This document shows positions 12,089 to 60,173 of a DNA stretch of 64,000 nt, in pieces (the first letter of the stretch is position 1; every line of letters starts with the position of its first letter). Source of the stretch: Lepidodermella squamata (lineage: Eukaryota; Animalia; Gastrotricha); the NCBI GenBank assembly GCA_047495785.1, contig JBLDXI010000012.1:62001-126000 (forward strand), read 5' to 3'. Under the pieces are notes generated by a model, which searched no databases, was not told where the DNA came from, and saw nothing but the letters and a program-made list of their open reading frames with translations. A program made the translations under genes and the position numbers.

Positions 12089-12376
12089 CTAGGCCGAGCG
12101 AACTTTGTAAGGACGCCCGTTGATGAATCGAATTCGAGGCGTTTCCGCATCGACATCGCTCCGTTTGTCGTCGGAGAATAGGTCAGAGTTCAACATATAA
12201 GAGTGAACATCGTCATCAGCGTCGACTTCTCGGTTGTAGTTTCGCTTGTAGTCCGTGAACAAATCATCGGCGTTGAGCATGTAGCCGTGAACGTCGTCTT
12301 CGGCATCGACTGGCCGCGGGTCGGCTCGAACTACAACGGCAAACATGATGAGCCCAATAATCATTGCGCTGTTCAT
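12089..12376 (-). CDS. Small secreted peptide precursor with a duplicated DDVHxYMLN...KR unit and C-terminal IRFINGRPYK
   Basis: Intronless ORF, aaaATG start, signal peptide, two KR sites. Confidence 0.85.
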   Translation of the reverse strand: MNSAMIIGLIMFAVVVRADPRPVDAEDDVHGYMLNADDLFTDYKRNYNREVDADDDVHSYMLNSDLFSDDKRSDVDAETPRIRFINGRPYKVRSA

Positions 12377-12860
12377 TTTCTGGTTCAAAAAATTCTGTAT
12401 AATCAGGAAAAATTTGACTGGCTTCTATGTGTCCCTGTCGCGTTTTTAATGTGATAATTAGAAAATTCTCACACGTGAGTAATAACAGTAATTAAAAACG
12501 GCTCGTGATGACCTACAAAAAAATGGCGATGAGGCAGTAAACAGCACGCTTTTTTGTTTGAAAATTGAATCAATAATCCACTTAGGAATACCTTTTAGCA
12601 TCTACCTGGAGTGCATCAGTGCGACGCGCCAAATCGAATTTTACACGCCTCGATGAGTGTTCATACGTTTTTTTGCTTTATTAGCACATTTTCCGTCCCT
12701 GAATCACACTAAATCGTTCCGAATTCTGTCGAAATGGGTTTAATAATTTATCAAATTCTAGCAATATTTCTAAAAATCAATATTGATCTTTATCTAAAAA
12801 ATAATCGTAAGCTTTTAGCTTCGAAACATAACAGAAATGAAATTTGTTAATGTGAAATTG

Positions 12861-13085
12861 TCATTCGATCATCCAGGCCGGGTAGTGCCATTGAAAACTG
12901 CGACGACCACCGTTGTTCACAGAATTAAGCATGAGAGCGACAGGTTCCTCCGCAATTTTGTGATGAGCGGCTGTCTTTCGTTGCTGGGCCATTAATCGGT
13001 TCGCTTGCGTTGGGTTCATGAGACTCATTAACACGACCAGGATTGCGAAAATACTGATAACGGCAACCTTTACGGTAAACGGCAT
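12861..13085 (-). CDS. Small secreted peptide precursor, YPAW subfamily
   Basis: Signal peptide; ALMLNS; GRR; ends WHYPAWMIE. Confidence 0.85.
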   Translation of the reverse strand: MPFTVKVAVISIFAILVVLMSLMNPTQANRLMAQQRKTAAHHKIAEEPVALMLNSVNNGGRRSFQWHYPAWMIE

Positions 13086-14403
13086 TTTTTGCGCTGGATT
13101 TTTGAAAATCGCAAAAACAAGAAGAAAATAGTGTCTCTCTATCTACGTGTTTTCACAGCAAATTGAATCGGCGATAGAGACAGGCGGCGAAGTCCTATGA
13201 GAGGAATAACGGTGGGATAACGGCTTAATCGACCAGAATGCTGAAATTATTATAAAGAATTTGCATTGTAGCTCTATTGATTGATATCGTGGCGATGTGC
13301 GATAATTGTTTGTGCGAGTGCGAAGCCACTAAATCAACCAGTCAGTCGTGTATTATAGAAAAATAAAAATATGGCCATCGGCTAGCCGTTTCCTGTTTAC
13401 CGAGCGTAGGAAGCGCCTGATTATCTCAATATCTTATCGAAATTTGCCATGATGAAAGTTGGATTGAGGCTTCTGATGCCCTTTAGACTGCAAGGGTCTC
13501 TTTTTGACACAGATATATACTATTTGAATTTAGCTTATAATTAGGTTAGACTAAAAATGAATCAAAAGTTCCTTCTTTCGGACCTCGAAAAAATAGGTTT
13601 AGGAATGAATCTAAAAAGCTCCGGCTGAGCTGGGAATGATAAATGATGTTAATGCCCTAGCGAGACCAAATAACTATAGGATGACAAAAATGCAACGAAA
13701 ATATGAAATAAATAAATAATTATTGTTATTAAGAGAGTAACTACGCGCTTCGTGCTTTTGTTAACACCAAACTTGTATGATCACTGGAAATTCAAATAAA
13801 GCCAAACAAGATCTTGAAAGAAAGACGTATTTGCAAAAAAATTGACTAAAAGTGATTAATTTCCAGGGTGACACAGTAAGCTGGAGGTACCAGGGTGTTT
13901 TCAAATTTCTTCCAACCTGATACCTCCAGGTATATGGAATAACTTCGATGTTAGAATCCTCTAGAATGTTGTTATCGGAAAAATCCCTGACTTGTAAAAT
14001 CGATAGTCGGAATCGATATCGGTTCTAAAAGGCCGAAGTATAACTCGGAAGTGACCGCAATGATAGCACAATACAGTGAGATAAGGAGACCCTGGAAGGA
14101 TTGGCGCTGGTAAAAATTCGTAAGGTATAAGGATCGATCGTTTGATTTTCCGATATAGAATAATGCAAGGAATGACCTTCCGATGAATCAGATATTTCAC
14201 CCTGTTGCGTATTTTTTCCGACATGTCAAATCAAAATGCGGCTCAAGAAAAGAAAACATGGGTTCGATGAAACGACATGGTAAAAATTCAGTTCTTTTGA
14301 ACCCTGAAGTCACTTTTTCTCATATTTGAAACTCTTAAAATTTCCATCACGAAGATTTTATTGAAAATAAGCACAAGTGAATTGTAACTCAAAGTATAAG
14401 TTG

Positions 14404-14763
14404 TCAGTATTTTATAGTAGATTGCCAGGGCGTATCCCTGCTTTTGCTTTTGACAATTACAGTTGATTTCTTGGCTGGATTGCCTTTGATGGGCCGATAG
14501 TTCTTCTTCGATGGCTTCAGAATCTTCACCGTATCAGTTTCATCTTCCCAAAGCCATGCTGGGTGCAGACGGAGAAGTTGCCGCTTGAACCACTTGGAAT
14601 ACACGGGATCTGATAGGTATAGATTATGACCGTCGTCCGCTCTCAACGCGACCATTTTCTCCTCTTTAAGCGGCTTTTGCTTCCGCAAACTTTCGACCAG
14701 GGGAAGCGCGATACTCAGCAGTAGTAGCGCGGAAGAGAAAAACATGTTGAAGTCTAGCTTCAT
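14404..14763 (-). CDS. Small secreted protein, SDPxY/PAW subfamily
   Basis: Signal peptide; DDGHNLYLSDPVYSKWFKRQLLRLHPAWL; basic tail. Confidence 0.85.
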   Translation of the reverse strand: MKLDFNMFFSSALLLLSIALPLVESLRKQKPLKEEKMVALRADDGHNLYLSDPVYSKWFKRQLLRLHPAWLWEDETDTVKILKPSKKNYRPIKGNPAKKSTVIVKSKSRDTPWQSTIKY

Positions 14764-15206
14764 TTTCAAAATATTGATGTTCTACTTGTTTAACAAATGT
14801 TGATTCTGCTTTTGCGGTGTTTTCTAAGGTGCCAGTCGCTAGATGCGGTGCTGGGCAAAACGTTGGCGTGTTTTTTGTCGCTACGCTTTGCGTCGGCGTT
14901 TTTACTACACCACCCCTCGACGCAGTTCAAAAAAAACTGATGAAATATTTACGAATGCTAAAATTACCCACCCTGGGATACCTCCGACCTTGACCGCCGT
15001 CTAGTTAAAGCCCACGCTTGAACTATAATGATCAATTTTCGGGTGAAAATTGTCTTGGTTTAGCGGAACCTATTGCGGAATAAAATATCGAATACTTATT
15101 AATCGGTTCTCCCAATATTTAAAAGGTTCAAAATTTTAAATTTCAAATTTTGAAATAATTAAAATTAAAATTTCAAACAAATTATAAACATGAGAATACA
15201 ATTAAT

Positions 15207-15968: not shown

Positions 15969-16562
15969 TTATGACCGTAAACTTGGCGGCAGGACATCTC
16001 GGACGGGCGGCTTCCTCGCCATCTTCCTTAATTGCTTAGTTTGATTAGGATCCTGCACCTGATCTTCTTCGTCTAAATCTTCCGCGGAACGGCTGTCCAG
16101 GGATAGATACCAAGGCAGACCTTTATGGTGAACCTTTCGCCGCGGGTTCCTAGCCAGGTAACTTTGGTCCCGAATCATTTGGGCATACGTCTCGTCGTCT
16201 CGGCTCTGAGCATTTCGAACATGATCGCCTTCAGTTTTCCCATATTTCTTCCCAGTTCTGAACTCGATGACGTTTTTCGGCTGTAATAAGTCTTTCTCCT
16301 TCTCCCGAGCAACTTCGACTTTAGCCTTCACCTTGACCACATGCGGCTTCAGCACAACTCGGATAAAATCGTCAGCATTACTCAGGAACCACTCGCGATC
16401 GTGCTTATCGCGAAGCTGCTTCCTCAGGTACCACTTCATGTAATACGGGTCGCTTTGGTCGAAATAAACCGAACTTTCATCACCAGCAACACGGCCGTTA
16501 TGCGCCAGAGCAGTGTAGGGAAGAAGAAGGGCTAGACTAGTAAAAATATGCGAAGCAATCAT
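15969..16562 (-). CDS. Secreted protein (197 aa), SDPxY subfamily
   Basis: Signal peptide; SDPYYMKWYLRKQL; intronless; no Cys. Confidence 0.85.
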   Translation of the reverse strand: MIASHIFTSLALLLPYTALAHNGRVAGDESSVYFDQSDPYYMKWYLRKQLRDKHDREWFLSNADDFIRVVLKPHVVKVKAKVEVAREKEKDLLQPKNVIEFRTGKKYGKTEGDHVRNAQSRDDETYAQMIRDQSYLARNPRRKVHHKGLPWYLSLDSRSAEDLDEEDQVQDPNQTKQLRKMARKPPVRDVLPPSLRS

Positions 16563-16963: not shown

Positions 16964-17329
16964 CTAATTTCCAACAGACTTGAACACAATTCTTGGTACT
17001 AAGTGGCTTTTCTTTGTCACAGCGTTTATAATTTGCCTAGTGTACAGGTCCAGGTTGATTTTACTTCGTGGAGGTCCGCTTTTCGACTGGACCCTTCTGA
17101 ATGCTTGCTTGTACCATCTCCTATCATTCGGATTCAGCCAATATAGGGAGTGAATGGATCCGCCGACTCTTAACGATCCCATTGTCTGCTTGCTAAGGTC
17201 CATTAGGCGGTACTGAGATACTTTTGGCCGAGGTTCGGGCTCGTCTTGGTAGAGACCAGCGAGGCGATATGCACCGATGATTTCAACGAGATCCAGCAGG
17301 ATGAAACAAATGATGCAAAATAACTTCAT
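16964..17329 (-). CDS. Small secreted protein, distant SDPxY subfamily member
   Basis: Signal peptide; IHSLYWLNPNDRRWYKQAFRR. Confidence 0.8.
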   Translation of the reverse strand: MKLFCIICFILLDLVEIIGAYRLAGLYQDEPEPRPKVSQYRLMDLSKQTMGSLRVGGSIHSLYWLNPNDRRWYKQAFRRVQSKSGPPRSKINLDLYTRQIINAVTKKSHLVPRIVFKSVGN

Positions 17330-18256
17330 GGCTGATATAAATCGCCACAGGTTGAATTCTCTTATTATATATACTAATAAAAGCAGTAAAAAATAGATTT
17401 ACTACGTTATTTCGGATGCACTCTACAAACAAGATGATGACACTACGCGTTATGACTAACTAAATCCGCTACTACGCAAAGAAATGAATCAAACTACCTT
17501 ATAAATTATTCAATCGACTGAACAGAACATTTTCCGACTGAACAGAGAGAGGAAAATGTTCTGTCTGTGTTGTAAAAAAACTTGTTGTCAAATTTGTTCA
17601 AGGTTTCAACTAAGTTGAAGCTGGCTAATTTACGTCACGTTTTCGAAATTCGAGGGTCTTGTTTCGCACTTCTATCTTGCTGAATTTCAGTATTTTGGTC
17701 GGCTCGAAATCGTCGGATTAGCTATATGCTATCACCCCAGACAGAAATGATGTCAGTTTGACAGGACGTCGGGGGAGAAATGAAACATTTGCCGAATTTT
17801 TCAGCAAATCGCGATAAACTTGAAAAGGAACGATTCCTATAACCGTGAACCGGTTATCAGCCAGATTTTGAATATTCAAGTTTCACACCTCTCGGATGCT
17901 TTCATCCACCTTAAAAGACGAGCGCCACACTTTTAGTCGCAATAAAAAATGAAAAAATATCTCAGATTACCCCAACAAAATTGGCTCGCTGTGTGGGCAG
18001 GGTAACTTTGGATACTGTTTCCTCGCAGTTGAATAGATTTGCAACGGCAGAGGACAAAATAAAGGGGTTTATTGCATTAAATGTCCCGTGTGTTTTAAGC
18101 TTTCGAATGCTGTGAGGTCGGTAAGTATTGCGTTCATAATTTATGTTGAAGAAATTACATAAGCAGTGCAATCTGCGATGTTGATTTGGGACCCTTCGTA
18201 TCTCCTTAAAAACATATCAGCTCGGATCAAAATTTGACATGGGCATTCCAATATTA

Positions 18257-19204
18257 CCTCAATTCCGGGCCCATATTAGTTCCGTCCGGCCCCCAAGCGT
18301 TGGTTGCGCAATTGGAGGGTAAAAGTGGACTTAGCGCAAAACGCCAAGTCGAAATTTTAAACAACATGTTGGCCGCGCGCGCTGATGTCAAAGGGCTATT
18401 TTCGAATATCCTAGCGGTTTTTATTCCAAAATGAAGCTTAACTAATTCTCTATCAAATGAATATGGGTTTCTGGCGAGAGAAATTTGAATTAACAGGTTT
18501 TACGAGCACTCCAACTTTTCATTTACGCGTGTGCACGTTCCTGGTCAACGCGCAAAATTTTAGGTGCACGTAAAACTTTTTATTTTAATTTTTTCGAGCG
18601 AGAACCCCATATTCAATCGATAGAGAATTGTCTGAATTATTTTTTGGTATAAAAACCGACGCGATATTTCAAAGTAACCCTTTAGCATCTTTGCGCGCGG
18701 TTTTAAATTTGTTAAAAATAATTCAACTTATGCGCAAAAGCCAAGTCCTGATTTTTAACAAACTTAAAACCGCGCGCAAAGATGCTAAAGGGTTACTTTG
18801 AAATATCGCGTCGGTTTTTATACTAAAAAATAATTCAGACAATTCTCTATCGATTGAATATGGGGTTCTCGCTCGAAAAAATTAAAATATAAAAGTTTTA
18901 CGTGCACCTAAAATTTTGCGCGCGAGTTGAGAGCGCGCGCACTCGCGTCTCAAAAGTTAGGATGTGCGGTAACCGTTTTTTCGTTCATTTTTCACGCGAG
19001 AAATCCATATCTATTCTATAGAGAATTTTCTGAACTTTCTTTTGGTATAAAAACCGCCTAAATAATCAAAACTTGCCCTTTGACTTTACCGCACGCGGCC
19101 TTGAAATTTCTAAAAATTTCGACTTTTGCGCGTTTTGCGCGTTTTGCGCTAAGTCCACTTTTACCCTCCGACTGCACGGAACTAATATGGGCCCGGAATT
19201 GAGC
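18257..19204. mobile_element. Foldback/Mutator-like non-autonomous element with an exact 9-bp target-site duplication
   Basis: TIR CTCAATTCCGGGCCCATATTAGTTCCGT at both ends. CCAATATTA occurs at 18248-18256 and 19205-19213. Central near-perfect inverted arms of about 170 bp (about 18550-18720 / 18750-18922). Confidence 0.85.
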
Positions 19205-19494
19205 CCAATATTATCAATCTCAGCAGGTGTCCGCATGGCGTTCAGGTGCCAAATCGGATAATTTTGGACTGTATAAATTGAAAAAATGTAGAATCACACA
19301 CTGCTATTGCATTGCGATTGAGCGTCCGATATTACCCTCTAATTTTTCAAATGTGAGACATAGCTCTAATAAACTGAAAATTCCCAATCCCATTCCGTAT
19401 GCAATTGAGCGTTTCCAGATTTGCCCGATAATTGTCCAAGTCATAACTGTTTCAGTAAAAAACGAATTGAGTATAGCGATGAAATCTTATTATT

Positions 19495-19830
19495 AAGGCG
19501 TGACGTTTCGGTACGCTCTCGTACCTTATCATCAGACTAGAAACTAGAAGTATAGAAGAAAAACAACAAAATTAAAATCACAACAAAGAAAAAGTAAAAC
19601 AAGAAATAAGAATTAAAATAATTTTAATTTGACGGAGTCCGACTGCACATTGAGGCTGATTTTTAGTTTGGTCTTTTTGATCAGCAGGCTCTCGTGCAAG
19701 AGGGCATCCCACCTGTTATGACCCTTGCGTAGAATCGTGAAACAGTTGTGCAAATTAAAATCATTCCTCAGCTCATGGGTCTTCGCGCGCACATGACGCA
19801 GTTTGAAAAGTTCAGATCTGAGGGTCACCC
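19495..19830 (-). mobile_element. 3' remnant of a Penelope-like retroelement (GIY-YIG C-terminus plus pseudo-LTR)
   Basis: ORF ends FTIL...LLHESLLIKK...LNVQSDSVKLKLF*, typical of PLE GIY-YIG ends, and is followed by a hammerhead-like core. Confidence 0.75.
19499..19540 (-). ncRNA. Hammerhead-ribozyme-like core (weak helix I)
   Basis: Minus strand: CTGATGA-taa-GGTACG(agag)CGTACC-GAAAC-GTC. Helix I is only about 2 bp. Confidence 0.55.
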
Positions 19831-19847
19831 TTAAAAATCAATACATA

Positions 19848-20312
19848 CCGTATTTACTTGAATAAAGGCCGCGGCGATTATTTTCCTAATTTTTCAGTAA
19901 AGGTAAAAAAACGCGGCGATTAATCGAGTGCGGTCTTTATTCGCGTGCGGCCTTTATTTTCCTCTCTTAGCCAAAAAACGATTTTTTCAAATGTAACCTC
20001 AAATGTAACCGACAACTTCGGGCAGTTCAATAGAATCTCTCGCGCTTTATTCTTCATCATGTTGCGGCTGACACGTATTTTGCGCGCGCGCATGCTTCTT
20101 ACCCACTCTACCAACTTGAATATTTGAAAATTGAAAAAAATAATTAAACATTTTCACCTCTCGCGATGATGCTGTGCCGCGCGTGTTAGAGCTGCGCTGA
20201 TTAATCGCGTGCGGCCTTTATTTCGATTGTTTTTTTTAAATAACACAATTTTGCGGCGATTATTCGCATGCGGCCTTTATTCGGAATGCGGCCTTTATTC
20301 AAGTAAATACGG
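19848..20312 (-). mobile_element. Internally deleted pogo/Tigger-like (Tc1-mariner) DNA transposon
   Basis: TIR CCGTATTTACTTGAATAAAGGCCGC with TA on both flanks. Internal fragment EWVRSMRARKIRVSRNMMKNKAREI resembles a CENP-B-type HTH. Confidence 0.8.
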
Positions 20313-20692
20313 TATATCATTGTTGAAGGTTTTCGAAAATCACAGAAAATCATGAACAATTTATCCAAGTTCGCTCCAAGTATCAAAAGGTAGCTCTTGG
20401 TATGACGAATTTACTTTCGTTCGATTTAATTCTCTCCGAATCAGTTTTCACAGTTTATTTCCGAATGCGAAAACTTCTTTCCCAATTCTTAACCAGTTCT
20501 TTCATTATTTAAATTTTGAAAAAAATATTAACGCGTTCCTCTTGAAGAGATCTATCAGATGGCATTTGAATCTTTCTCATGCGACCTTCAATTGCGGAGA
20601 AATCAATCGTTGAAATTTTGAATTTTTCGATTTTTGGACTCCAAGAAATTGATGAATCAGCCGACCATATTGGCGCCCATTGCGTTACACTC

Positions 20693-21124
20693 CTTTTCTC
20701 GTGAGTAGTCAGTCTATACCATAGACATAATTTAAGATAGACTGACTACTCACGAGAAAAGAACGGAACACCATGGCTCGGCTGGGGGTGAGCTTCCTTT
20801 TGAGCCCAAGTTTGACCTTCAACGATTTTTTACTGAATTGTAAAACATTATTGAGGATTCTCGGTAGGAAAATACCATTACTTTTAATTTGGACACCTAA
20901 GCCTCTAGCCACACATGTGATTCACGCGCAAGGTTCACGCCGTAGTCTGGTTCAGATTCATGCGCATGAATCATGTGTTTCTTTGCTAACAAGCGAAAAG
21001 TAATGGTATTTTCCCACCGAGAATCCTCAATAATGTTTTAAAATTCAGTAAAAAATCGTTGAAGGTCAAACTTGGGCTCAAAAGGAAGCTCACCCCCATG
21101 GTCTATACTGATATTATGTATATG
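20693..21124. mobile_element. Composite palindromic MITE-like element(s)
   Basis: Perfect 25-bp hairpin at 20693-20761. CATA.ACATAAT-type inverted ends at 20720 and 21124. Inner inverted arms of about 100 bp at 20784-20885 / 20996-21097. Confidence 0.65.
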
Positions 21125-21270
21125 CTTGTGACTTATTGGTTAAGCTCGTGACTGGTTTTGGAAGAGGTCCTGAGTTCGATTCCCAGCTCGCAACGTAAGT
21201 TTTCTCAAAAGAGAAATTCTCGGCCCCAAGCCTCGGTTCACGTGGACAGCAGGCTAATAAGTATCACATA
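21125..21270 (+). mobile_element. tRNA-derived SINE head (degenerate)
   Basis: A-box-like TGGTTAAG and B-box/T-arm CTGAGTTCGATTCCCAG at tRNA spacing, without a complete cloverleaf. Confidence 0.5.
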
Positions 21271-24194
21271 TAGGGGGTACATATAATATCACTGGATATT
21301 TCTGGCGTAGTAAAACACCACCGCCTCGTTGCATATATACCACTTTTGCCATGACATTCAGCCACGCATGTGTTTTATCACCTGCAAATATTTCTTCAGC
21401 AACATAACACATTAATAATAGTAATGCATAGCTAAAGTAGGCTGATATGCATCAACGCGTATGTGCGCAAAGTGACCTGTAATCACTGAAAGCGGCTGTA
21501 ATAACGATACCGCGCCACAAAGTCATCGACGTTTCGCTTAATCATCATCATATATTTCTTATCTACGTGCACTGAGCTATGCCTTCGGTACCGAGAAGAA
21601 ACTCTTGTTATACAGCACATCGAAAAACTATATAGCGTTTTCTTAAATATATTAGGAAAAAGAACCTCTGATTAGGAATATTAAAGTAAATACCAATAAC
21701 TTTTTATCATACTTTTATCATTTTGTTTATTGTTTTGCAGTGCCTTGGTGTAGAATTCCCCCAAGTCTGATAAAATTCGGCGACTCATTTTTGTAACATG
21801 GAAGCCGCGATAAAAACAAGCAATAAACGCTGCGATGGTGGTTTCACTCGGTTATTGCATCAGCGCAGGACACCGCATATTATGTGTGAGCCTCGAAAAA
21901 CAAAGCTGACATTCATTCAGAATTTTTTCACGCAGTAAAATGCGACCAGGCAATCTTCAAAAATGTTGGACAATCTTTCTCATTTCTCTGTCTTTCTAAC
22001 TAACGCCCAAGAGGGCGAACTCAATAAAAATTTACGTTGAGTAACACGTAACATATTTTTCTGCACCATTTTAGCAACCATCGGTTCCGCTCCTTAGCCA
22101 ACTGCCCCGCCAACAACAGTTCCCACCAATAGGTTAGTGCTGTCCCCTTCCATGGCCGCAGTCCGCCCCGATAGGGCCCGGGCTGTGCTCAGGTACCGGT
22201 CCCTGGCCGATACCTGCGCCGAACCCCAGCTCCGCCCCATGTCATGCAGGTCGTAGCCCCCCAAGTTCTTGGCCTCCCAACCAGTTTTACTTTCGGTACC
22301 CTGGCTGTCGTCGTTCGACCGTCCTTGCGGCTTTGGGCAGAACGAGTCAGATAGCGGCAAGAGTTACCGGTGGCTACTTTGTAGATGAATATCCGAGGCT
22401 ATCGCTTATAGCAGGAACAAAAAGGACCTTCAAAAAGGACAAGGCTTAATTTAATTGATCCTTAATTTTTATCAGAGGCTTTCCTTTCTGGAATCGCCAC
22501 CGCCATGAGTTTTTCATTTTTGTGCCTGACCGTGAAATCTTTTCCCAATTTCTATTACTAGTGTTTATTCCTCAAACAGTTTGCTAATTCAATCACTCGA
22601 CTAACATTATTTTCGCCCTACACAGAAATGGGGGTGAGTACCACATTTTTCACGATAATTGCTGAGTATTGCTGAGGTGATGCGGGTCTAAGATATCCGC
22701 CGCCAGCTTTCTGATTATCATTGCTAAAATTTCCCAATTTCAGAAAACTTCGTCGAAGCGACAAAATTCGAATGGAAAGTCGATCAAGGCGGCACACGTG
22801 AAAGCAAATGATCTGAGGAAGTAAGTTCCTGGTCCTCACCAACCGGAATCGAAATCATATTTTCTTCATGAACATTGCTTATAGGAGGATGCTCGCAAAG
22901 TTGTTAGTTGCGCGTTTACGGCCCGAAACACTCAACGAAGAATTGAAAAAGGGCGACAGTGCAGTTCAGGCCGACGAATTCGAGAATCAGGCGTTTCAGG
23001 CCGCCACGTTCTCGCCACTTCAAAGCATATTACCCGATGCCGGGCAAGATGGCAATCAGCCACTGGAAGCCATAGTGCATGATCCTGATATGGATGTGTG
23101 GATGAAACAAGATGAAGATGACGATGATGGCTCGTCGGTCGATGCTAGTCAAGACGAGGATGACGATGTCATTTATCTAGCCAAATAATCATATCAAATC
23201 AAACAATCAGACATGAGACATAATAACCGGTAACGTGAGACCTGTGATTGAGAAGGGCATCACCTGCGAATTAAGTATTCGGAACGCGTGCCGTTGGTGC
23301 ACACGCGTTGACACCGTGCTGAAATGTACGCTAATAGAATATAATTATAATAATATTTCATTCAATAGTAATTCACTAATAACTCTCACTCGTGTCTCAT
23401 CGTTTACATCCATTATATCTTACTCATAGAACATAGTTGATATTTCTCTATTTACCTCGCCTCGCATTCATAACATGCCTTCATCTCGGTCTCTGAGATC
23501 GTAAATACAGCTCTCATGTAGCTCTCATTTTAATTTTGTAAAATATACTAAAAACATTGCCTGTGAACTAGAAAAATATACTATATCGGTGGTGAGGCGC
23601 CTCGGCCCTTTTTAATTGCTAAACGTAGCGAGACAAATTGCAACAATAAATCAGTGTATCAGTGTATCGGTCACCCGAGTATGCTATTCCGTCATTGCCA
23701 TTTGCTATAATTATCATGTAACAATGTATAATATTGCAGGCCTACGTGAGGGATTGGCGCTCCCGTTGGTCTCCCGCCCGCCAAGGCGAAGATCGGTCCA
23801 GCGGCGGTCCTGGTTGAGGAAGCGAGAGCGGTAGTTCAAGCACGTGGTGTCACTCCAGCAGGGTCTGGCGCAGCCGGCGCGCCAAGCGGTTTGGTGATTC
23901 CGCCTTCGGCCTCGCCGTCCGCTGCCTCACAAGCCAAGCCGAGTTCCAGGTCAAGTTGTACGCTTGTCGGCGCCAGGGAACACCGCACAGCTCAACCAGC
24001 AGCGGAACCGTAACCGTGACCAATTTCGCCGCTAGCGACCCAATCAGGCGTATCAACAACAGCCCTACCAACAATCACACCAGCGACAGCAGCAGCCTCA
24101 GCAGCAATACCATTTTCAACACAACAACCGCCGCAGAATGCACCGCCGCACACGTTTCACAACGCGCCCAATTTGTTTCCAATGAAAGTCGAAA

Positions 24195-48313: not shown

Positions 48314-48589
48314 ATGATGGCTTCATTCAACTGGTATTTATTAGCCTTAACCCTATTGATATCGACTGTTGCCGCGATGGATGACGGTCATTTGCGATTC
48401 AGGCGGTATTACTCAGCGGTCTCAAAGCAAAACGATGCGGCAGATGATGATCCTTTGCTTAACTTTTATAATAAGTGGCGGTCGAAAATGGCGAATAGGC
48501 GCAAAATCCGCCCGGCTGATGGTATCAAGATTTCAAGTTCAGCAGCTCCTAATCAACGAAAAACGGCTAAAAATCCTCCCTCAATTTGA
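48314..48589 (+). CDS. Small secreted precursor, RxRR-YY subfamily
   Basis: Signal peptide; HLRFRR|YYSAVS...NKW. Confidence 0.85.
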   Translation: MMASFNWYLLALTLLISTVAAMDDGHLRFRRYYSAVSKQNDAADDDPLLNFYNKWRSKMANRRKIRPADGIKISSSAAPNQRKTAKNPPSI

Positions 48590-48949: not shown

Positions 48950-49171
48950 ATGTCGAAAAAATCAGCTATTCTAGTTTTGCTCCTCGTCTCTACGCTGGTG
49001 ATTGCTGCTGTTTCTGCAGATGTTGCCGAGACCCATGCCAGATACCGCCGGTATTTCGCAGCAGTTTCCGGCCCAGGCGGAGCGGCTAATGACGGAACGG
49101 AGAGCATAATCACCTTCCTGCGAAACAAGTGGTCGAAAAAGCCGAAAAAAGTCACAGCAAATCAATCCTAA
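48950..49171 (+). CDS. Small secreted precursor, RxRR-YY subfamily
   Basis: HARYRR|YFAAVS...NKW. Confidence 0.9.
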   Translation: MSKKSAILVLLLVSTLVIAAVSADVAETHARYRRYFAAVSGPGGAANDGTESIITFLRNKWSKKPKKVTANQS

Positions 49172-49275: not shown

Positions 49276-49656
49276 CTAAAATTTCCTGGTGAATTTGCGC
49301 AGTTGACTACGGAAAAATTTGGTCTTGAGATTAGGATCAAGCGCCGACTGTTTCGCGGCTATAAAAGTCTGTTGCCGGGTTTGCTGCTGTCCTGGTATCA
49401 TTTGATTTTGTCGGCTATCAGCTTTCAGCTTCAATTGTTGGTACATCAACGCCCTGAAGCGTTGATTTGTAGCTTCATCGCTCGATTGAAGTTGCTTCTT
49501 CAGGGCTGTTCGAACATAATCGGCTAGGCTGGTCCCAACTGGGCGCTGTGAGAGAAGCGACTCGTATTGAGCTGGGTTCCCCGGAGTCTTCGCCTCGACA
49601 ACTTGCAGGGCTAAATAACTAGCGGAGATTAGAAAGCTGCTGATTAGCAGGTGCAT
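49276..49656 (-). CDS. Small secreted Gln/Lys-rich protein
   Basis: Signal peptide ending VEA; TATAAA about 45 bp upstream; basic C-terminus. Confidence 0.8.
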   Translation of the reverse strand: MHLLISSFLISASYLALQVVEAKTPGNPAQYESLLSQRPVGTSLADYVRTALKKQLQSSDEATNQRFRALMYQQLKLKADSRQNQMIPGQQQTRQQTFIAAKQSALDPNLKTKFFRSQLRKFTRKF

Positions 49657-50081: not shown

Positions 50082-50369
50082 ATGAAAATGGCTATCGTCT
50101 CGTGTTTCTTGGTGATTGCGGTTTTTCTCTCCGCCGTTTCAGCAAAAATCGACGAGAACGATGAGGTTCACAGTCACATTTTCGATCCCAACTTTGCGAC
50201 GCAGCTTCGACCGCTGCCTAATCGAGCAAGTGCCGTTTTCAGTGGCCTGAGGACGGGGAATATTGGGAAAAATAAGGCGAAGGATGAAAGCATTGTTATG
50301 ACCTTCCAAAACGGCCAGCTGTACGTTTCGAAGAACAACAGACGCCGCCCGAACAAAATCAAGCCTTAG
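50082..50369 (+). CDS. Small secreted precursor, DEVH/FSGLR.GNIG/QNG subfamily
   Basis: IDENDEVHSHIFDPNF; RASAVFSGLRTGNIG; FQNGQLYV. Confidence 0.9.
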   Translation: MKMAIVSCFLVIAVFLSAVSAKIDENDEVHSHIFDPNFATQLRPLPNRASAVFSGLRTGNIGKNKAKDESIVMTFQNGQLYVSKNNRRRPNKIKP

Positions 50370-51299: not shown

Positions 51300-51554
51300 A
51301 TGGCGGCCTTTAGTTTAAAAATCATCCTCGTTCTGTTTTCCGCCGTTACAACGGTGTTTGCTTTCGACCACATCGATGAAAGCGACGATATCAACCTATT
51401 CGAACCGACTTATGCCCAACCAGCTCGGCCCATGTTGAGCCGTGCTGGGGCGATTTTCAGCGGCCTTCGAATGGGCAATATCGGCCGGAAAGCGAATGAC
51501 GACCGGGTCTTGGCGATTCAAAACGGCAAATTAGTACTCGCTAAACTTGTTTGA
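51300..51554 (+). CDS. Small secreted precursor, paralog of 50082
   Basis: IDESDDINLFEPTY; RAGAIFSGLRMGNIG; IQNGKLV. Confidence 0.9.
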   Translation: MAAFSLKIILVLFSAVTTVFAFDHIDESDDINLFEPTYAQPARPMLSRAGAIFSGLRMGNIGRKANDDRVLAIQNGKLVLAKLV

Positions 51555-51931: not shown

Positions 51932-52120
51932 ATGAAAGGTTGGAAAGTTGCAATCATGCTATTGGTCATTGCCGCGATGGCGATTGTTGGCGAGGCGGCC
52001 TCTTTTGACACCGATTTCGAACGCCATCGCCGTCTTCTATCTGCTCTACCGAGGCGCGGAGAGTCAAGAGGAAAACCGAGTTTATTTGACGTTATTCTAT
52101 CCCGATGGGGAATCGACTAG
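51932..52120 (+). CDS. Small secreted precursor, distant RxRR subfamily member
   Basis: Signal peptide; RHRR|LLSAL...SRW. Confidence 0.85.
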   Translation: MKGWKVAIMLLVIAAMAIVGEAASFDTDFERHRRLLSALPRRGESRGKPSLFDVILSRWGID

Positions 52121-52250: not shown

Positions 52251-52535
52251 TCAAACAACAGATCGGCGTCGCATCAGGTGAAGTCGATCAAAGTCATCGT
52301 TAATAAATTTTAGTATCTCAGAATTATCAGCATTCAATGGCAGTAAGTCTTCGGGTGATTCGAGAGAATGAACTGCTGGCCAGAAAAGCGACGACCAAGC
52401 AGCATCGCCTGCTTTGTTGAATGACGTCGATGAGAAAACGCCGCTGGGCTCGAAGCTAGAAATGCCTCTGCCTCGGACCAACACGCTGAAACACGCGATC
52501 ACAGCAACGATTCTGATCATTGAGGGACGAGCCAT
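52251..52535 (-). CDS. Small secreted precursor
   Basis: Signal-peptide-like N-terminus ending VRG; RRR near the end. Confidence 0.7.
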   Translation of the reverse strand: MARPSMIRIVAVIACFSVLVRGRGISSFEPSGVFSSTSFNKAGDAAWSSLFWPAVHSLESPEDLLPLNADNSEILKFINDDFDRLHLMRRRSVV

Positions 52536-53879: not shown

Positions 53880-54170
53880 TCATTGATTCCGGTACCTATA
53901 GTTAGTCGTCTTTGACTTGACGGCTGTTTTTTGTTGATTGGAGCGAACTCGCGGGTTCAAGAAGCGCTTATTCATCCCGAACAGCTCACCCGCATCGTCG
54001 TCCAGCGTCATCGCATACTCATTTCCGTTGAAACTCCCGTACATATTCTGCTTCGACAGCTCGTTGCCGTTTTCGAAGCGGTTAAAATTGCCGTTGTAAA
54101 GCTGCGCAAATGCTACATTCACTATCAACACTAACCCGAGAAAAATTGCGAAAAAATTCGAATTCTGCAT
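53880..54170 (-). CDS. Small secreted Asn-rich precursor
   Basis: Signal peptide ending AFA|Q; internal repeat Y.G.F..NGNE; NKRF. Confidence 0.85.
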   Translation of the reverse strand: MQNSNFFAIFLGLVLIVNVAFAQLYNGNFNRFENGNELSKQNMYGSFNGNEYAMTLDDDAGELFGMNKRFLNPRVRSNQQKTAVKSKTTNYRYRNQ

Positions 54171-54508: not shown

Positions 54509-54763
54509 CTAGAGACGGCGGAATTTATACGGCCGGCCGTAAATCCACCTGATGAAAAATTCCGATCCATCGTATTGCCGACTCGGGTTGATATCGCGAT
54601 TTGAGCCACTTGGAAAATCGTCGCCAATTCCGCCCATTCTTTTCCGCATAAGTTCCCGCTTGCCGACAAGAGCCGGAATAAAAACGTCACCCTGGACGTT
54701 AGCAGCCAGGCAAAAAGCCAGGGCAAAGGACACAATAGCAAATATTGCCAGAATTCTCGCCAT
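54509..54763 (-). CDS. Prohormone-like precursor with GKR and C-terminal IRWIYGRPYKF
   Basis: Signal peptide; VFIPALV-GKR; RKR; C-terminal motif shared with the 12089 gene. Confidence 0.9.
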   Translation of the reverse strand: MARILAIFAIVSFALAFCLAANVQGDVFIPALVGKRELMRKRMGGIGDDFPSGSNRDINPSRQYDGSEFFIRWIYGRPYKFRRL

Positions 54764-55017: not shown

Positions 55018-55392
55018 TCAGTGAAATTTCCAGCTTTTGTTCGGTCGTTTGACAAGATTAATGACCAGGCGGGCATTGCTCGGCAGGGAATTTCCAAGTT
55101 TTGATTTTTCACTCGGAACCTGCTTGGGCGGCCGGGTCGATGTTTCAATTTCGTTGTGAGCTCGTTGCTTTTTGAATAAAGTTCCAGTTCTAATTAGAAA
55201 CGGCGAAAATACATCCTTAGCCGTTGGCGCCTCGTTTTCCTTAGTCTTGCGGGTCATGTGTGGGTATTTGAGTTGCAAAGCTCGCCTCAAATTAATATTT
55301 GCAAGCTTATCTTTAGAGTAAGCTGATGTAGAAAACTCGATGAAAGACAAGCAAAATACCAAGATTGATAGGTAAAAATTGATTTGCAGCAT
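55018..55392 (-). CDS. Small secreted basic protein
   Basis: Signal peptide; aaaaATG; RR and KR sites. Confidence 0.8.
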   Translation of the reverse strand: MLQINFYLSILVFCLSFIEFSTSAYSKDKLANINLRRALQLKYPHMTRKTKENEAPTAKDVFSPFLIRTGTLFKKQRAHNEIETSTRPPKQVPSEKSKLGNSLPSNARLVINLVKRPNKSWKFH

Positions 55393-55529: not shown

Positions 55530-55970
55530 TCATTGATTCGCCAATCCAAGGCGCCTGTTGAAATAATTCTTAGGGTAGTAGGCAACGAAAGGTCTAGCGA
55601 CGTAGTACGATCCGCTGGGTATTGGCTTTAAATTAACTGCGGCATAGCTCGGAGGCGGCTTTCTTTGCCTTGTTACTGTAGCCGGTTGAGTTATTTCGGT
55701 CGTAGTAGCCGTATCATCCTGATTGGACGTTGAAGCCAGGGTAGTTGTAGTAGTTAATTTAGCCTCAAAAATAGAATTTTGAACTCGGTTGAAAAATGTA
55801 CGAAAAGATTCTCGCTGATAATTATGACTTGTCGGAATGAAGTTCACCATGATTCTTGACCCAGGTTGGTGGGGTTGAATCCGGACCTGCGGTAGCTTCC
55901 AGAGAGGACCATAATTACTTTCGACAAGCGAAAGTTGACAAAAGACAAGCAAAATAGCAACGAAGATCAT
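55530..55970 (-). CDS. Small secreted protein with a Thr-rich segment
   Basis: Signal peptide ending VES; TATAAATA about 45 bp upstream; Tyr/Pro-rich end. Confidence 0.8.
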   Translation of the reverse strand: MIFVAILLVFCQLSLVESNYGPLWKLPQVRIQPHQPGSRIMVNFIPTSHNYQRESFRTFFNRVQNSIFEAKLTTTTTLASTSNQDDTATTTEITQPATVTRQRKPPPSYAAVNLKPIPSGSYYVARPFVAYYPKNYFNRRLGLANQ

Positions 55971-56175: not shown

Positions 56176-56457
56176 TTAGGCTAATTCTTTGCTCAGGAAC
56201 TTGATGAACTTTGACTTGCTGTTGCTGCGAGGTGAGTAGAATTGGTCTGATTTCATGCTGTGAAAATGACGGTCGGACGGTTTCAGCTGCGCGTTTGATT
56301 TCGAAGATCGCGGGGACCTTGTCTGGCGCGAAATCGAGTTCGCTCTGATCAATGACGACGACGAAGGGCTGTTGACGAAAAAAGAACTGCGAACTGCATA
56401 GCCAATTGCGCAGTTGACTAGAAGGAAAAAGAGAAGAAAGCCACCAACCAGTTGCAT
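56176..56457 (-). CDS. Small secreted Ser/Arg-rich protein
   Basis: Signal peptide ending AIG; RQTR. Confidence 0.8.
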   Translation of the reverse strand: MQLVGGFLLFFLLVNCAIGYAVRSSFFVNSPSSSSLIRANSISRQTRSPRSSKSNAQLKPSDRHFHSMKSDQFYSPRSNSKSKFIKFLSKELA

Positions 56458-57000: not shown

Positions 57001-57234
57001 TCAATACTTCGTAGCCCAGTCGCTCCTAGCTTTCGGCTGGATGACATAGCGGTCCAATAAACTGATGTCTTCATCGGCAGGTGGGCTAGGAACACGGCCG
57101 CGAGTTCGCCACTTTGAGAAGCGTTTCTCGAAAACGGACTGAGCCTCCTCCATCGAATCTGCGGCGAATGCAGTGATAACAGAGATGAGGCACATAATAA
57201 GAACAGTCGCAGTTATGAGATTAACAAAGTTCAT
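57001..57234 (-). CDS. Small secreted precursor
   Basis: Signal peptide; acidic spacer; EKR|FSKW. Confidence 0.85.
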   Translation of the reverse strand: MNFVNLITATVLIMCLISVITAFAADSMEEAQSVFEKRFSKWRTRGRVPSPPADEDISLLDRYVIQPKARSDWATKY

Positions 57235-57360: not shown

Positions 57361-57699
57361 TCACTTTTCAATCGACAATTTTGCCAAATTGTTGTTTGGC
57401 TTGAAATATGACGCTAATGCGCTTGCAATAAAAAAATAACGCACATGGTTCGCACTGACATTAACGGACGTTCCTAAAGGTCGTTTTTCATTAGGACGCT
57501 CGAGTGGATCGCCTGGATCGCCGGCCTCTATTGTTTCCTCGGAATATCGACCAAGATATTGCCGATTGTCATACTGATCGTCGGGTATTGCGTGGCTCTT
57601 CACGAAATGCTTCGATTCATGGCGCCTTAATATCGCGTATGAATTGCTAGCTGGTGAGATGATTAAAAAAGGAAAAAGAAATTTCCAAACTATCATCAT
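57361..57699 (-). CDS. Small probably secreted protein (start 57699 or 57735)
   Basis: Weaker signal peptide; RR and KR sites; same orientation and spacing as the array. Confidence 0.6.
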   Translation of the reverse strand: MMIVWKFLFPFLIISPASNSYAILRRHESKHFVKSHAIPDDQYDNRQYLGRYSEETIEAGDPGDPLERPNEKRPLGTSVNVSANHVRYFFIASALASYFKPNNNLAKLSIEK

Positions 57700-57898
57700 G
57701 ATTCGTAAAGTTAAAGTGCAACAAACTTTAGTCATCCTTGCTTAAATAGCGCAATTTGCGGCGATATGAACATGTGCTCGATAATTCGATAATCGGCCGC
57801 AAGACGAATGTAACATTTCAGAGAATTAACTCAATTGTACTAATTCAATTCGGACAATCTCCAATTTATTTCTCCAAGAATCACGGAACAACAATAAT

Positions 57899-58162
57899 TC
57901 AGCTGGGTTTTGGTTTGTTTTGCTTTTTATTCTGCATTTTGCTCAAAATCCAGCGAGATAGATGGCCAATTTCCTCGTTCTCCTTGCTTCGTTGTTCCAA
58001 ATTTTTGAATAGAATCCATCGATGAGACGGGTTGGCCGAGTGCTCGCTCTTGCCTTTAGTAACAGGTGACTCTTGCAGTACAACCAGTCGATTTTTCGCT
58101 GCAGCAACCAGTTCAAGCGAGATGAGTAAACAAGCGGCGAAAACTGCAGAGTATTTCATCAT
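57899..58162 (-). CDS. Small secreted protein, LSRWxL subfamily
   Basis: Signal peptide; HRWIL and GHLSRWILSKM. Confidence 0.85.
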   Translation of the reverse strand: MMKYSAVFAACLLISLELVAAAKNRLVVLQESPVTKGKSEHSANPSHRWILFKNLEQRSKENEEIGHLSRWILSKMQNKKQNKPKPS

Positions 58163-58367: not shown

Positions 58368-58712
58368 TCATGCGGTGAAGAATGAAGGGTGCGAAGCTCT
58401 CAGTTTGCCCCTTCCGCTATCGGTTTTCGGCGAGATGACGACCTTGCTTTTCACTTTGGACAAGATTTTTGTTAGCAGCCAGCGAGATAGCTGCCCAGCA
58501 TCGATGACTTCCATTCCCTGTTCAGCCTTGTTCATAGCTTTGTTCAGCCGACGGACCGTTAGCCAGTAACCTGGGGCAGTTTTCCTTGAATCTCGCAGGC
58601 TGAAGACTGGGCTAGTTTTCGGGCTTGAAATTGGCTCAATTTCGGAATAACTGAATTGTGCAACTAAGAGAATGATCGCAACAGAAATTGAGAAATAACT
58701 TTGAAGCCACAT
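58368..58712 (-). CDS. Small secreted protein, LSRWxL subfamily
   Basis: Signal peptide; GQLSRWLLTKI. Confidence 0.85.
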   Translation of the reverse strand: MWLQSYFSISVAIILLVAQFSYSEIEPISSPKTSPVFSLRDSRKTAPGYWLTVRRLNKAMNKAEQGMEVIDAGQLSRWLLTKILSKVKSKVVISPKTDSGRGKLRASHPSFFTA

Positions 58713-58989
58713 GTTAAGTGTTCAAGTGAAACGTAACGTTAAAATAATGATATATAGTTCAAGAAGCCTCCGCTTTCCCCGCTTCCTTTCTGATTTTGTG
58801 CAGAGTAACAATGCAGGAAGAGAAGGCGAAATGTTCTGGCGAAATGTCCTGGCTGAGAATGCCAACAGGAAGAACTCATCGCACACTTCCCCCTTTCCTC
58901 CTGCTTGTTAATAGGAAGTAGATTGTAATATAACGCAACTTTATTGTCAAACAGAACGAGTGCATGCGGTACATTATTATCATCATTAG

Positions 58990-59391
58990 TTAGCTCTGAG
59001 AAGTTCTTGACAACTTGAAGAACTTGTCATCGGCAATGTAATACTTCGCCACTGGAGTTGTATTGGTTGTGAAAGGTTTCGTCTGGAACGGAACATTCTT
59101 CCGATTTTTGCGGACTTTCGGCTTCCTGGAACTTGCTCCAGACTTGAGGCTGGGCTCGAGCCGCTGACCGATTGATCCTAAGTCATTCAGCTTCCTCTGC
59201 TCTGCTAACCATTTTAGCTTCTCCTTTCGAATTCTCAATTTCGCTCGAAGTTTAGCGTCGTCGATGGTTAGTAGTGAACTATCCTCCTTCGCCGAGGTAT
59301 CATGAGTTATGGCTCGATAACTAATGGCGAACCCGTCGACAAGGCCGACACAGATTGAAGCGACTATTGTAAAAATTAGAACGGTCTGCAT
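58990..59391 (-). CDS. Small secreted basic protein
   Basis: Signal peptide ending VDG; Lys/Arg-rich; YYIADDKFFKL end. Confidence 0.8.
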   Translation of the reverse strand: MQTVLIFTIVASICVGLVDGFAISYRAITHDTSAKEDSSLLTIDDAKLRAKLRIRKEKLKWLAEQRKLNDLGSIGQRLEPSLKSGASSRKPKVRKNRKNVPFQTKPFTTNTTPVAKYYIADDKFFKLSRTSQS

Positions 59392-59633
59392 TTTCGGACA
59401 AAAAGAGAAATTGACCTTGCTATATGAGTAGGAATTGCAAAAGTCATGGCAGTTAGATGACGCGATATGTCACGCCTGAGGGGCTGCGTGGATTTAATGA
59501 TTTAGCGTCAAATTATCGTAGCCGGAAATATTCCACGCTCGAGTTTTTCCATCGATCTCCTCACACGGCCCACAACCTCTTTAAAGTCATCAATGAAAGT
59601 AATACTTTTTTATTTCATGTTTCCATGGGAAAA

Positions 59634-60173
59634 TCACTCATAAGGAAAATGAGAGTTCGAAAGTGGATAATCACCATTGTCCGCGGTGACGAAATTTTGG
59701 TCGTGATTATCGTTATCGAGACCGTAAACTTCCGCCAAAACTGGATCGACGATCTGTTGATATCTCGGGTCCTCGTAACGACCGCTTCGGAACAGGAAAA
59801 AGTTACGGTGCATCAGAGCGTTTTTGCCACTAGTAGCCGCTTTGTAGGCTGTCTGCAGATCGTCGAGAAATTTGATGTAACTTCCATCGCCAGGGGCTGA
59901 TTTGTCGTCGATCGCTTCTTCATCCTCTGTTGTTGTAGTCATGACAGTGTTGATCACGTTTTCTTCAGGCTTATTCATGAGGTGACGGCCTGCCAGGCGG
60001 TTGTAGATGGAGGTTTTGTTGGCGGTAGATAAACCGCTGTTTTCGCCGCTTTCCTCGGGCCCAGCTCGGTAGTACATAGTTAGAAGTACGGCGGCGAAAC
60101 AGACGACTAAAATTAATAACGAAGACGCGATAACACAGGGCACAGCGCCGAAAATCGAACGCTTGGTCATCAT
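59634..60173 (-). CDS. Intronless protein with an N-terminal signal anchor
   Basis: Hydrophobic segment of about 25 aa; acidic Cys-free ectodomain with YEDPRY. Confidence 0.75.
   Translation of the reverse strand: MMTKRSIFGAVPCVIASSLLILVVCFAAVLLTMYYRAGPEESGENSGLSTANKTSIYNRLAGRHLMNKPEENVINTVMTTTTEDEEAIDDKSAPGDGSYIKFLDDLQTAYKAATSGKNALMHRNFFLFRSGRYEDPRYQQIVDPVLAEVYGLDNDNHDQNFVTADNGDYPLSNSHFPYE

Follow-up and report, generated by a model that had tools for sequence, protein, structure and literature searches.

A large array of short single-exon genes probably encoding cysteine-free secreted proteins in the gastrotrich Lepidodermella squamata

A 64,000-nucleotide stretch of the genome of Lepidodermella squamata (Gastrotricha), here called the window, contains a dense array of short open reading frames (ORFs) between positions 12,089 and 60,173. 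The window is composed of positions 62001-126000 of contig JBLDXI010000012.1 (C12, 1.38 Mb), in an animal genome of 121 Mb and 151 contigs. The ORFs are real genes that are constrained and without detectable relatives, and the 11 ORFs for which RNA was tested are transcribed and unspliced. The products are almost certainly secreted, judging from their sequences. The array is probably a supercluster of separate single-exon genes for small, Cys-free secreted proteins, a heterogeneous set that would form a mixed extracellular repertoire. Proteolytic processing, amidation and extracellular action are predicted along with secretion.

Gene content and gene signals

The region 12000-60200 of the window was scanned for ATG-initiated ORFs of at least 55 amino acids whose N-terminus reaches a Kyte-Doolittle mean of 2.3 or more over 12 residues. 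This hydrophobicity measure and a crude -3/-1 rule, not SignalP, served to identify signal peptides. The scan identifies 46 signal-bearing ORFs, whereas 30 dinucleotide-preserving shuffles contain 1.4 +/- 1.1, an approximately 30-fold excess. With four weaker-scoring or shorter ORFs, the list comes to 50 genes encoding 51-197 amino acids, of which 43 are minus-strand and 7 plus-strand genes. The initial annotation had counted about 49 (42 minus, 7 plus), and the N-terminal hydrophobic signal that it described is seen in 46-50 of the window ORFs. The cleavage rule, a heuristic, is passed by 48 of the 50.

The mature parts had also been described as essentially free of Cys. This description holds, as 43 of the 46 ORFs with a signal contain no Cys beyond residue 25, compared with 18 of 47 other ORFs nearby (Fisher p = 1e-8). 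Within 12.0-60.2 kb, Cys makes up 0.25% of residues in signal-bearing ORFs versus 2.13% in other ORFs. This lack of Cys would suit products that are linear and largely disordered.

The genes carry their own start and end signals. An A is present at -3 in 73% of array genes and AAA stands directly before the ATG, in agreement with the A-rich start context noted previously. AATAAA or ATTAAA, also expected from the initial annotation, lies no more than 150 nt past the stop codon in 130 of the 147 genes of the wider array described below (88%), versus 25% of random positions. TATA-like boxes are present as claimed, but TATA[AT]A occurs within 120 nt upstream in only about one-sixth of genes. Position-by-position composition reveals T-richness at -10 to -30 upstream. 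A k-mer comparison of array genes found no common upstream promoter motif.

Transcription and splicing

Three public runs, X1, X2 and X3, were used for an RNA test of positions 24800-30799, which contain 11 ORFs. X2 is DNA-like, with long contigs and an even depth of ~90. The runs X1 and X3 are small and their depth is very uneven, falling to zero in some bins. X1 is identified as cDNA because it contains a loose end at 28780 that is the reverse complement of a SMART template-switch oligonucleotide and a poly-T loose end at 26005; X3 behaves like X1. All 11 ORFs lie under genome-collinear contigs of X1 and/or X3, and no GT-AG joints are reported in these contigs over the tested stretch. The proposed single-exon structure is therefore borne out for each of the 11. 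The neighboring genes are intron-rich, as had been stated, and the introns of the adjoining cadherin-like gene are 42-55 nt long.

The ends of the transcripts are also informative. The cDNA 5' end of ORF 28479-28772 is 8-15 nt upstream of the ATG, and the template-switch oligonucleotide is joined straight to genomic sequence. For ORF 26294-26485, an X1 contig (26005-26517) starts 32 nt before the ATG and ends at a poly(A) site that lies 289 nt beyond the stop codon. Other RNA contigs reach 9-32 nt upstream of the ATG and are collinear with the genome, and the RNA loose ends of the tested stretch contain no leader sequence. With collinear contigs throughout, a 5' end captured for one gene and a poly(A) end for another, the tested ORFs are short monocistronic single-exon units.

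Two contigs of this stretch have unusual structures. X1 contig 26684-27381 includes the 3' part of ORF 27229-27642 and all of ORF 26757-27092, which could result from read-through, overlapping untranslated regions (UTRs) or an assembly merge. A further X1 contig stops at 28341 and is followed by 22 A's on the plus strand. The only obvious poly(A) site nearby is that of the minus-strand gene 28479-28772 (AATAAA at 28355-28350), which would be expected to appear as poly-T. The poly-A end could be due to antisense transcription, to A-rich sequence inserted in the other strain or to a quirk of orientation.

Constraint on the reading frames

A few percent of sequence separates X1 ("organism A") and X3 from the window, as in a sister strain or species. 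Among the differences listed for 24800-30799, the ORFs have ~14 synonymous and 6 non-synonymous codon changes, and the non-synonymous changes are mostly within or beside the signal peptides. ORF 28479-28772 has ~8 synonymous and 2 non-synonymous changes. This bias is what would be expected from purifying selection on the reading frames, in a small sample.

These observations bear on two readings in which the ORFs are not independent genes. A reading of the ORFs as chance frames or as decayed pseudogenes, in a region rich in repeats and close to the end of a contig, would agree with the failure to retrieve any annotation or homologue and with the repeat islands that break the array, but it is refuted by the 30-fold ORF excess, the Cys depletion, the poly(A) signals, the start context, the RNA contigs and the synonymous bias; the probability left to this reading is negligible. 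Polycistronic operons resolved by spliced-leader trans-splicing, or ORFs that are exons of larger genes, are very improbable. Same-strand runs of up to 43 genes, a median gap of 470 nt between neighboring genes and the X1 contig that spans two adjacent genes could all be accommodated by an operon. Yet 88% of genes are followed by a poly(A) signal of their own, the captured 5' end has no leader, the other contigs remain collinear upstream of the ATG and no splice joints occur in 6 kb, so that this reading is largely refuted for that stretch. None of the hallmarks of spliced-leader operons, namely a leader, gaps of ~100 nt and genes without an own 5' end, was found in the tested stretch or in the spacing of the array genes. 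Nematode SL1 was not found in the genome, and the rotifer leader, in the form searched, has no match there.

Extent, families and modules of the array

A wider scan covered contig positions 1-226000. It contains 147 signal-bearing, Cys-free ORFs of 50-213 amino acids, a lower bound for the array, and 123 of them (84%) are on the minus strand. The density is ~10 genes per 10 kb from ~14 kb of the contig to the end of the scanned part, and the array continues beyond 226 kb. Because the 147 genes span this distance, the array seen earlier is a slice of a supercluster of at least 210 kb.

Most of the genes are not recognizably related to one another. When mature parts are compared by phmmer and iterated hidden Markov models (HMMs), 105 of the 147 genes (about 70%) are singletons, and the rest fall into 16 small families whose members are mostly neighbors. 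When paralogues are pooled, identity amounts to 0.28 in the signal peptide; along the mature part, divided into thirds, it is 0.29, 0.26 and 0.25. Since identity is thus low and even along the protein, the pattern of toxins and frog antimicrobial peptides (AMPs), in which the prepro region is conserved and the mature part is hypervariable, was considered and rejected.

Several short motifs recur. The C-terminal motif [IV]R[FW]IxG[RK]P[YF]x[VL] is present in at least 12 array genes, 5 of them in the window. In the family fam1, this motif is modeled by AlphaFold2 (alignment A3) as a 12-residue beta-hairpin behind a disordered spacer, with a predicted local distance difference test score (pLDDT) of ~88. 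The xPAW[LM] motif occurs in 5 window genes and DD[VI]H[GS]Y in 6 genes. R[FY]HWQ is found in 8 genes, all outside of the window, and 6 of these make up one family, termed HWQ, that is predicted to form a helical hairpin (pLDDT 70-80). Leave-one-out HMM scores of the fam1 and PAW profiles are 8-28 bits.

The supercluster would have grown by local tandem duplication followed by deep divergence, after which most neighbors would no longer be recognizable kin and only short motif cores would be left. Purifying selection would act on the copies at present.

Two intronless, signal-bearing genes of bacterial type are also located inside the supercluster, at L009:959-2092 (C12:136959-138095) and C12:224892-226001. 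Both copies have two Lcl_C (formerly DUF1566) domains (146 bits). Each adjoins a gene for a 68-amino-acid peptide, and those two peptide genes are ~70% identical. The arrangement indicates a segmental duplication of the pair, with the Lcl_C gene as a candidate for horizontal acquisition.

Processing signals and candidate enzymes

Features of the mature parts of the 147 genes were compared with shuffles of each mature sequence. KRG sites are enriched (18 versus 3.2 +/- 1.7), and amidation-type C-termini, G[KR]0-2, are present in 19 genes (13%) versus 9.4 +/- 3.0 in shuffles, a twofold difference. In a direct count rather than a shuffle, 57 genes have an acidic part followed by a basic part and 10 have the reverse order. 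A signal peptide, an acidic pro-part and a basic C-terminal part, the order of an AMP precursor, are thus found here.

A KR↓G site (the arrow marks the predicted cut) lies between the acidic and basic parts in ~15 array genes, 4 of them in the window. In nearly all of these the pre-part is acidic, P3/P4 is usually hydrophobic or aromatic, and the tail is basic, with one exception. The tails are mostly 18-57 amino acids long, and one gene has four KRG sites. The pair 40909/42549 (genes are named by their first window coordinate) conserves the cleavage region and the RR-flanked KLRG end while the middle has diverged, which, as far as the sequences indicate, is neuropeptide-precursor behavior.

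An acidic spacer, KR or RxRR, and a basic peptide had been proposed as a common layout. The charge polarity and the enrichment of KR↓G and C-terminal Gly uphold it in part, but the total number of dibasic sites is at chance (250 versus 246 +/- 13). The prohormone layout therefore fits perhaps 15-25% of genes.

Enzymes that could process such precursors are encoded elsewhere in the genome. At least 10 loci, more than we would expect in a small invertebrate genome, carry the P domain of proprotein convertases (PF01483), and 8 of these score above 70 bits. There are at least 39 matches genome-wide to the PHM/DBH-type Cu2_monooxygen domain (PF01082), and amidation-type enzymes look unusually expanded. 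About 25 of these matches are in one tandem array at C13:1.99-2.36 Mb, where several have in-frame stops. The contig of the peptide supercluster carries the best match (141 bits), at C12:759231-759629 in a 603-amino-acid open frame.

In the ESM-atlas, the feature neighbors of three window ORFs are mostly neuropeptide or prohormone precursors, at sub-threshold scores of 0.83-0.91 that serve as leads only. The feature neighbors of ORF 27229-27642 are neuropeptide precursors, again as leads only.

Relatives and comparable systems

The statement that no known family is recognizable here agrees with the database searches. In Pfam, none of the 50 window ORFs matches a family at or above its cut-off. 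A match of ORF 57001-57234 to DUF7299 (19.7 bits, cut-off 27) was judged not meaningful. There were no hits to ORF 25715, the HWQ profile A2 or the fam1 profile A3 in a word-indexed library of 5.8 billion proteins, and none in an exhaustive phmmer search of ORF 27229-27642 against 1.84 billion representatives. A look-up of exact products retrieved no record either. Distant relatives of fam1 and PAW would be undetectable in any case, because their profiles reach only 8-28 bits. The library searches apparently excluded records of this genome and its nearest kin, so these negatives say little on annotation status; in our judgment, automatic annotation could readily overlook ORFs of this length. 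A literature search found no paper describing this array, and the nearest analogies are in Hydra and the Hessian fly.

Neuropeptide precursors (FMRFamide-related, allatostatin, tachykinin, PDH and CAPA) are likewise small, Cys-free and equipped with a signal peptide. A subclass of the array also shares their KR/RR sites, C-terminal Gly signals and short conserved C-terminal cores. The array differs in that it has no Pfam or sequence homology to them, encodes mostly one putative peptide per precursor and has dibasic sites at chance. The neuropeptide genes known so far lie scattered or form clusters of only a few genes, and we know of no arrays of more than 100.

Frog skin precursors of the preprodermaseptin type consist of a signal peptide, an acidic spacer, Lys-Arg and a cationic peptide that often starts with Gly. 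Their prepro region is highly conserved and their mature peptide is hypervariable. The same order of parts is present in the ~15 KR↓G genes of the array. Unlike in the frog type, conservation here is even along the protein and the tails are not amphipathic helices beyond chance.

The closest known kind, by analogy, is the tandem clusters of taxonomically restricted secreted peptide genes exemplified by the Hydra AMP clusters. The Hydra AMP families arminin, periculin and hydramacin have a signal peptide and a bipartite negative/positive charge, occur in tandem clusters and are taxon-restricted (PMC10945409). In Hydra, more than 30 short orphan genes, collinear and densely packed, also form an uncharacterized cluster (PMC10945409). 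The likeness consists of the signal peptide, the bipartite charge, the tandem paralogues and the lack of homologues outside of the lineage. There is, however, no sequence relation, and most Hydra AMPs have cysteine patterns whereas the array here is Cys-free. It is also several times larger (at least 147 genes), 70% of it is singletons, and antimicrobial activity is only hypothetical here.

The SSGP genes of the Hessian fly are another genomic analogy. They form very large tandem arrays of small, orphan genes with signal peptides (PMC2955719, PMC2990301), and in this they resemble the array here. SSGP families are described there as having unusually conserved non-coding parts and diversified coding regions (PMC2955719), a pattern that, as far as that description goes, is not seen among the paralogues here. 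The gastrotrich array sets itself apart from the Hydra and SSGP systems by its size, lack of Cys, heterogeneity and even divergence.

Genes and repeats of the window

The genes below are on the minus strand unless marked (+), and the secretion of each product is a prediction. The fam1 gene at 12089-12376 encodes 95 amino acids, with a signal peptide, a disordered acidic spacer, two DDVH[GS]YML motifs and the hairpin IRFINGRPYKV (residues 81-92, pLDDT ~88 in AlphaFold2). Family comparison places three more genes in fam1: 34415-34732 (+; 105 aa, with DDEVHGYML and IVWINGKAFKL), 50082-50369 (+; 95 aa) and 51300-51554 (+; 84 aa, 44% identical to 50082). The gene at 54509-54763 (84 aa) has a C-terminal hairpin motif of fam1 type, IRWIYGRPYKF, recognized by motif.

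The xPAW[LM] group begins with 12861-13085 (74 aa, secreted, HYPAWM at the end), found by ORF scan and motif. The gene at 14404-14763 encodes a basic secreted protein of 119 amino acids with an SDPxY helix and HPAWL, and matches ORF 25715 with E = 5e-9. ORF 25715-26017 itself (100 aa, secreted) has an SDPDY helix and YPAWLL, lies under RNA contigs and had no homologues in the library search. The 72-amino-acid precursor at 24871-25089, also under RNA contigs, ends in YPAWLVGK, a Gly-Lys amidation-type signal by sequence. The 63-amino-acid precursor at 26294-26485 ends in LPAWMLL; its unspliced transcript, seen as an X1 contig, runs from at least 26517 to the poly(A) site at 26005, and its sole coding difference is synonymous. 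An N-terminal module of SDPYY type is present in 15969-16562 (197 aa, secreted), identified by ORF scan.

Other genes lie in or near the stretch used for the RNA test. The 66-amino-acid basic precursor at 25303-25503 ends in FVGFRG by sequence and has low RNA depth. At 26757-27092, RNA covers a gene for a basic secreted protein of 111 amino acids in which 3/3 coding differences are synonymous. The gene at 27229-27642 encodes a prohormone-like precursor of 137 amino acids whose sequence has the sites KR, RRKR and RK, and by RNA its mature-part differences are all synonymous. An X1 contig (27982-28228) covers 27977-28222, which encodes 81 secreted amino acids, or 113 from an upstream ATG at 28318. 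The acidic, His-rich secreted protein of 28479-28772 (97 aa) has the deepest RNA contigs of the tested stretch, and its 5' end, from the template-switch end, is ~8-15 nt before the ATG. By contig coverage and hydrophobicity, the transcribed gene at 28933-29328 (131 aa) encodes a small multi-pass membrane protein, not a peptide precursor, with two further transmembrane-like segments and no Pfam match. The genes at 29625-29834 (69 aa) and 30361-30624 (87 aa) are paralogues for secreted proteins by phmmer, and both are covered by RNA.

Processing signals distinguish a further set by sequence. The 95-amino-acid precursor at 32581-32868 ends in SYGR, a Gly-Arg amidation-type signal. The 76-amino-acid pre-pro-peptide at 35233-35463 (+) has an acidic spacer, LW-KR↓G and a basic 31-amino-acid tail. 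The paralogous pre-pro-peptides of 40909-41106 (65 aa) and 42549-42737 (62 aa) both have W-x-KR↓G and the end KLRG, with an internal RR in the former and an RR in the latter. That of 42950-43189 (79 aa) has W-R-KR↓G and an 18-amino-acid tail ending in RAG, and the gene at 47610-47879 (89 aa) has an acidic spacer, RKRR and a basic tail.

Family comparison pairs several genes for secreted proteins. Those at 40186-40446 (86 aa) and 41913-42194 (93 aa) are paralogues with 44% identity. The genes at 44422-44673 (83 aa, with the motifs QGRYGNL and TSNLHLADL) and 45844-46083 (79 aa) are 51% identical, and 43813-44115 (100 aa) is a distant member of their family. The paralogues 48314-48589 (91 aa) and 48950-49171 (73 aa) are both on the plus strand. 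The genes at 57899-58162 (87 aa, with SRW[IL]L) and 58368-58712 (114 aa) form another pair.

The ORF scan is the basis for the remaining secreted proteins. The basic ones are encoded at 16964-17329 (121 aa, net charge +13), 30757-31086 (109 aa), 49276-49656 (126 aa, Gln-rich), 55018-55392 (124 aa, net charge +15), 56176-56457 (93 aa, Ser-rich) and 58990-59391 (133 aa, net charge +14). The others are at 43450-43605 (a 51-amino-acid peptide, acidic and Tyr-rich), 46979-47230 (83 aa, with a poly-Q stretch), 51932-52120 (+; a 62-amino-acid peptide), 52251-52535 (94 aa), 53880-54170 (96 aa, Asn-rich) and 55530-55970 (146 aa, with a Thr-rich middle). The signal-peptide call is weaker for 57361-57735 (124 aa). 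The ORF rejected above as a DUF7299 member, 57001-57234, encodes a 77-amino-acid secreted peptide. By hydrophobicity, 31945-32421 (158 aa) has a long N-terminal hydrophobic stretch that is either a signal peptide or a signal anchor, and 59634-60173 (179 aa, acidic) has a long N-terminal hydrophobic segment that is a probable signal anchor.

The gaps that had been called transposable-element islands are real breaks in the array, and their content consists of dispersed, partly palindromic repeats that resemble miniature inverted-repeat transposable elements (MITEs). By genome search, the island at 17400-24800 contains a palindromic element of ~950 bp at ~18258-19205 with many copies genome-wide. 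Two multi-copy repeats lie in the second island, 35500-40150: a ~200-bp palindromic element, MITE-like, near 37400-37600 and a ~460-bp repeat at 39533-40000. The palindromic MITE-like repeats at 18258-19205, ~37400-37600 and 30000-30400 match both strands at dozens of loci, and the stretch 30000-30400 has ~30-fold DNA depth in X2.

Flanking sequence and genomic context

The minus-strand genes that flank the array at 2900-5400 and 5860-10620 are intron-rich and highly divergent. The exons of the cadherin-like gene barely reach Pfam Cadherin (24 bits). The second gene resembled a pentameric ligand-gated channel by eye, and the single exon checked matches no Pfam family. The divergence of these genes suggests a fast-evolving lineage.

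The GC content is ~41%. No Rfam families or tRNA genes were found in the window. The nematode cuticle-collagen N-domain has no match here, in a search that was also negative in all control genomes. The telomeric repeat of the genome is present as TTAGGG arrays, an interstitial TTAGGG run is located at C12:237396, just past the scanned part of the array, and short interstitial telomeric runs are scattered genome-wide (752 matches of four units).

What the array may encode

Each gene would be its own single-exon transcription unit, with a short 5' UTR, an AAA-ATG start and its own poly(A) signal. Each product, of 50-200 amino acids, would have a cleavable signal peptide followed by a Cys-free, hydrophilic, usually net-basic part, and would enter the endoplasmic reticulum and then be secreted. 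The products may be sorted into five classes. The first, ~15-25% of genes, would be true pre-pro-peptides with an acidic spacer, hydrophobic P3/P4, KR↓G or RR sites and a basic tail, often with a C-terminal Gly(-Lys/Arg); they would be cut by the proprotein convertases of the genome and amidated by PHM-type enzymes. The second class, of at least 12 genes (5 in the window), would have a disordered spacer and a C-terminal beta-hairpin module. The five window genes with xPAW[LM] form a third putative class, some small helical-hairpin proteins encoded outside of the window a fourth, and the remaining genes, as singletons, a fifth. Our best guess for their role is a mixed repertoire of diffusible ligands and surface or defense peptides, not one uniform class. 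The initial annotation had proposed a lineage-specific repertoire of secretory peptides; its independent single-exon orphan genes for secreted proteins stand, whereas the sequences barely narrow the functions it offered.

Several observations weigh against a secreted peptide repertoire. Secretion, cleavage and amidation are predictions from sequence, with signal peptides called by heuristics only. The RNA evidence spans 11 of the 50 window genes and consists of assembled contigs without strand information or expression levels, and the synonymous/non-synonymous count covers ~20 sites among the differences listed. At least one member (28933-29328), and possibly three if the signal-anchor-like 31945-32421 and 59634-60173 are included, are membrane proteins. 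Dibasic sites in total are at chance, and there is no enrichment of amphipathic helices (the best helical hydrophobic moment over 18 residues is 0.452 versus 0.441 in shuffles, p = 0.32). Neither the classical prohormone layout nor that of a helical AMP fits the majority.

Two more uniform roles can be set beside the mixed repertoire. It is doubtful that most genes are neuropeptide or hormone precursors, a huge signaling repertoire made in many neurons or endocrine cells and read by G protein-coupled receptors or peptide-gated channels. Such precursors would explain the subclass with KR↓G, RR, C-terminal Gly and short ends (KLRG in 40909/42549; YPAWLVGK in 24871), the paralogues that retain short motif cores while the rest diverges, the purifying selection, the ESM-atlas neighbors and the apparent expansion of convertase and PHM-type genes. 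They would not explain dibasic sites at chance, the lack of homology to any neuropeptide family or the members predicted to be small folded or membrane proteins; most precursors have no repeated or clearly flanked peptide, and, to our knowledge, neuropeptide genes do not form arrays of this size. An exocrine or epithelial secretome, composed of antimicrobial, mucus or surface, adhesive or reproductive-gland products in the manner of the Hydra AMP clusters, is possible but has less than even odds. It is favored by the genomic organization, in which short orphan genes are packed in tandem on one strand, as in Hydra (PMC10945409), by the acidic-then-basic polarity with net-basic mature parts and by the deep contigs that some members have in cDNA from whole animals. 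It is opposed by the lack of an amphipathic-helix excess and of a conserved-prepro/hypervariable-mature pattern, by a composition that is not repetitive or adhesive-like, and by selection between strains that is purifying, not diversifying.

If the products of the mixed repertoire are made as predicted, the array would supply more than 100 new peptides and mini-proteins, all secreted, from a branch of the animals that has been poorly sampled. The recurring modules (xPAW[LM], the Cys-free 12-residue beta-hairpin and the basic tails released at KR↓G) are open to synthesis and assay. It is unlikely that the locus is a single-locus "peptide code" of more than 100 distinct ligands generated by tandem duplication and co-expanded with convertase and PHM-type monooxygenase genes. 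Such a code would exceed in size every neuropeptide-like gene cluster known from animals and would serve as a natural experiment on the origin of new peptide ligands. The locus is a large-scale case of repertoire growth by tandem duplication in which homology is lost and each copy would still be constrained.

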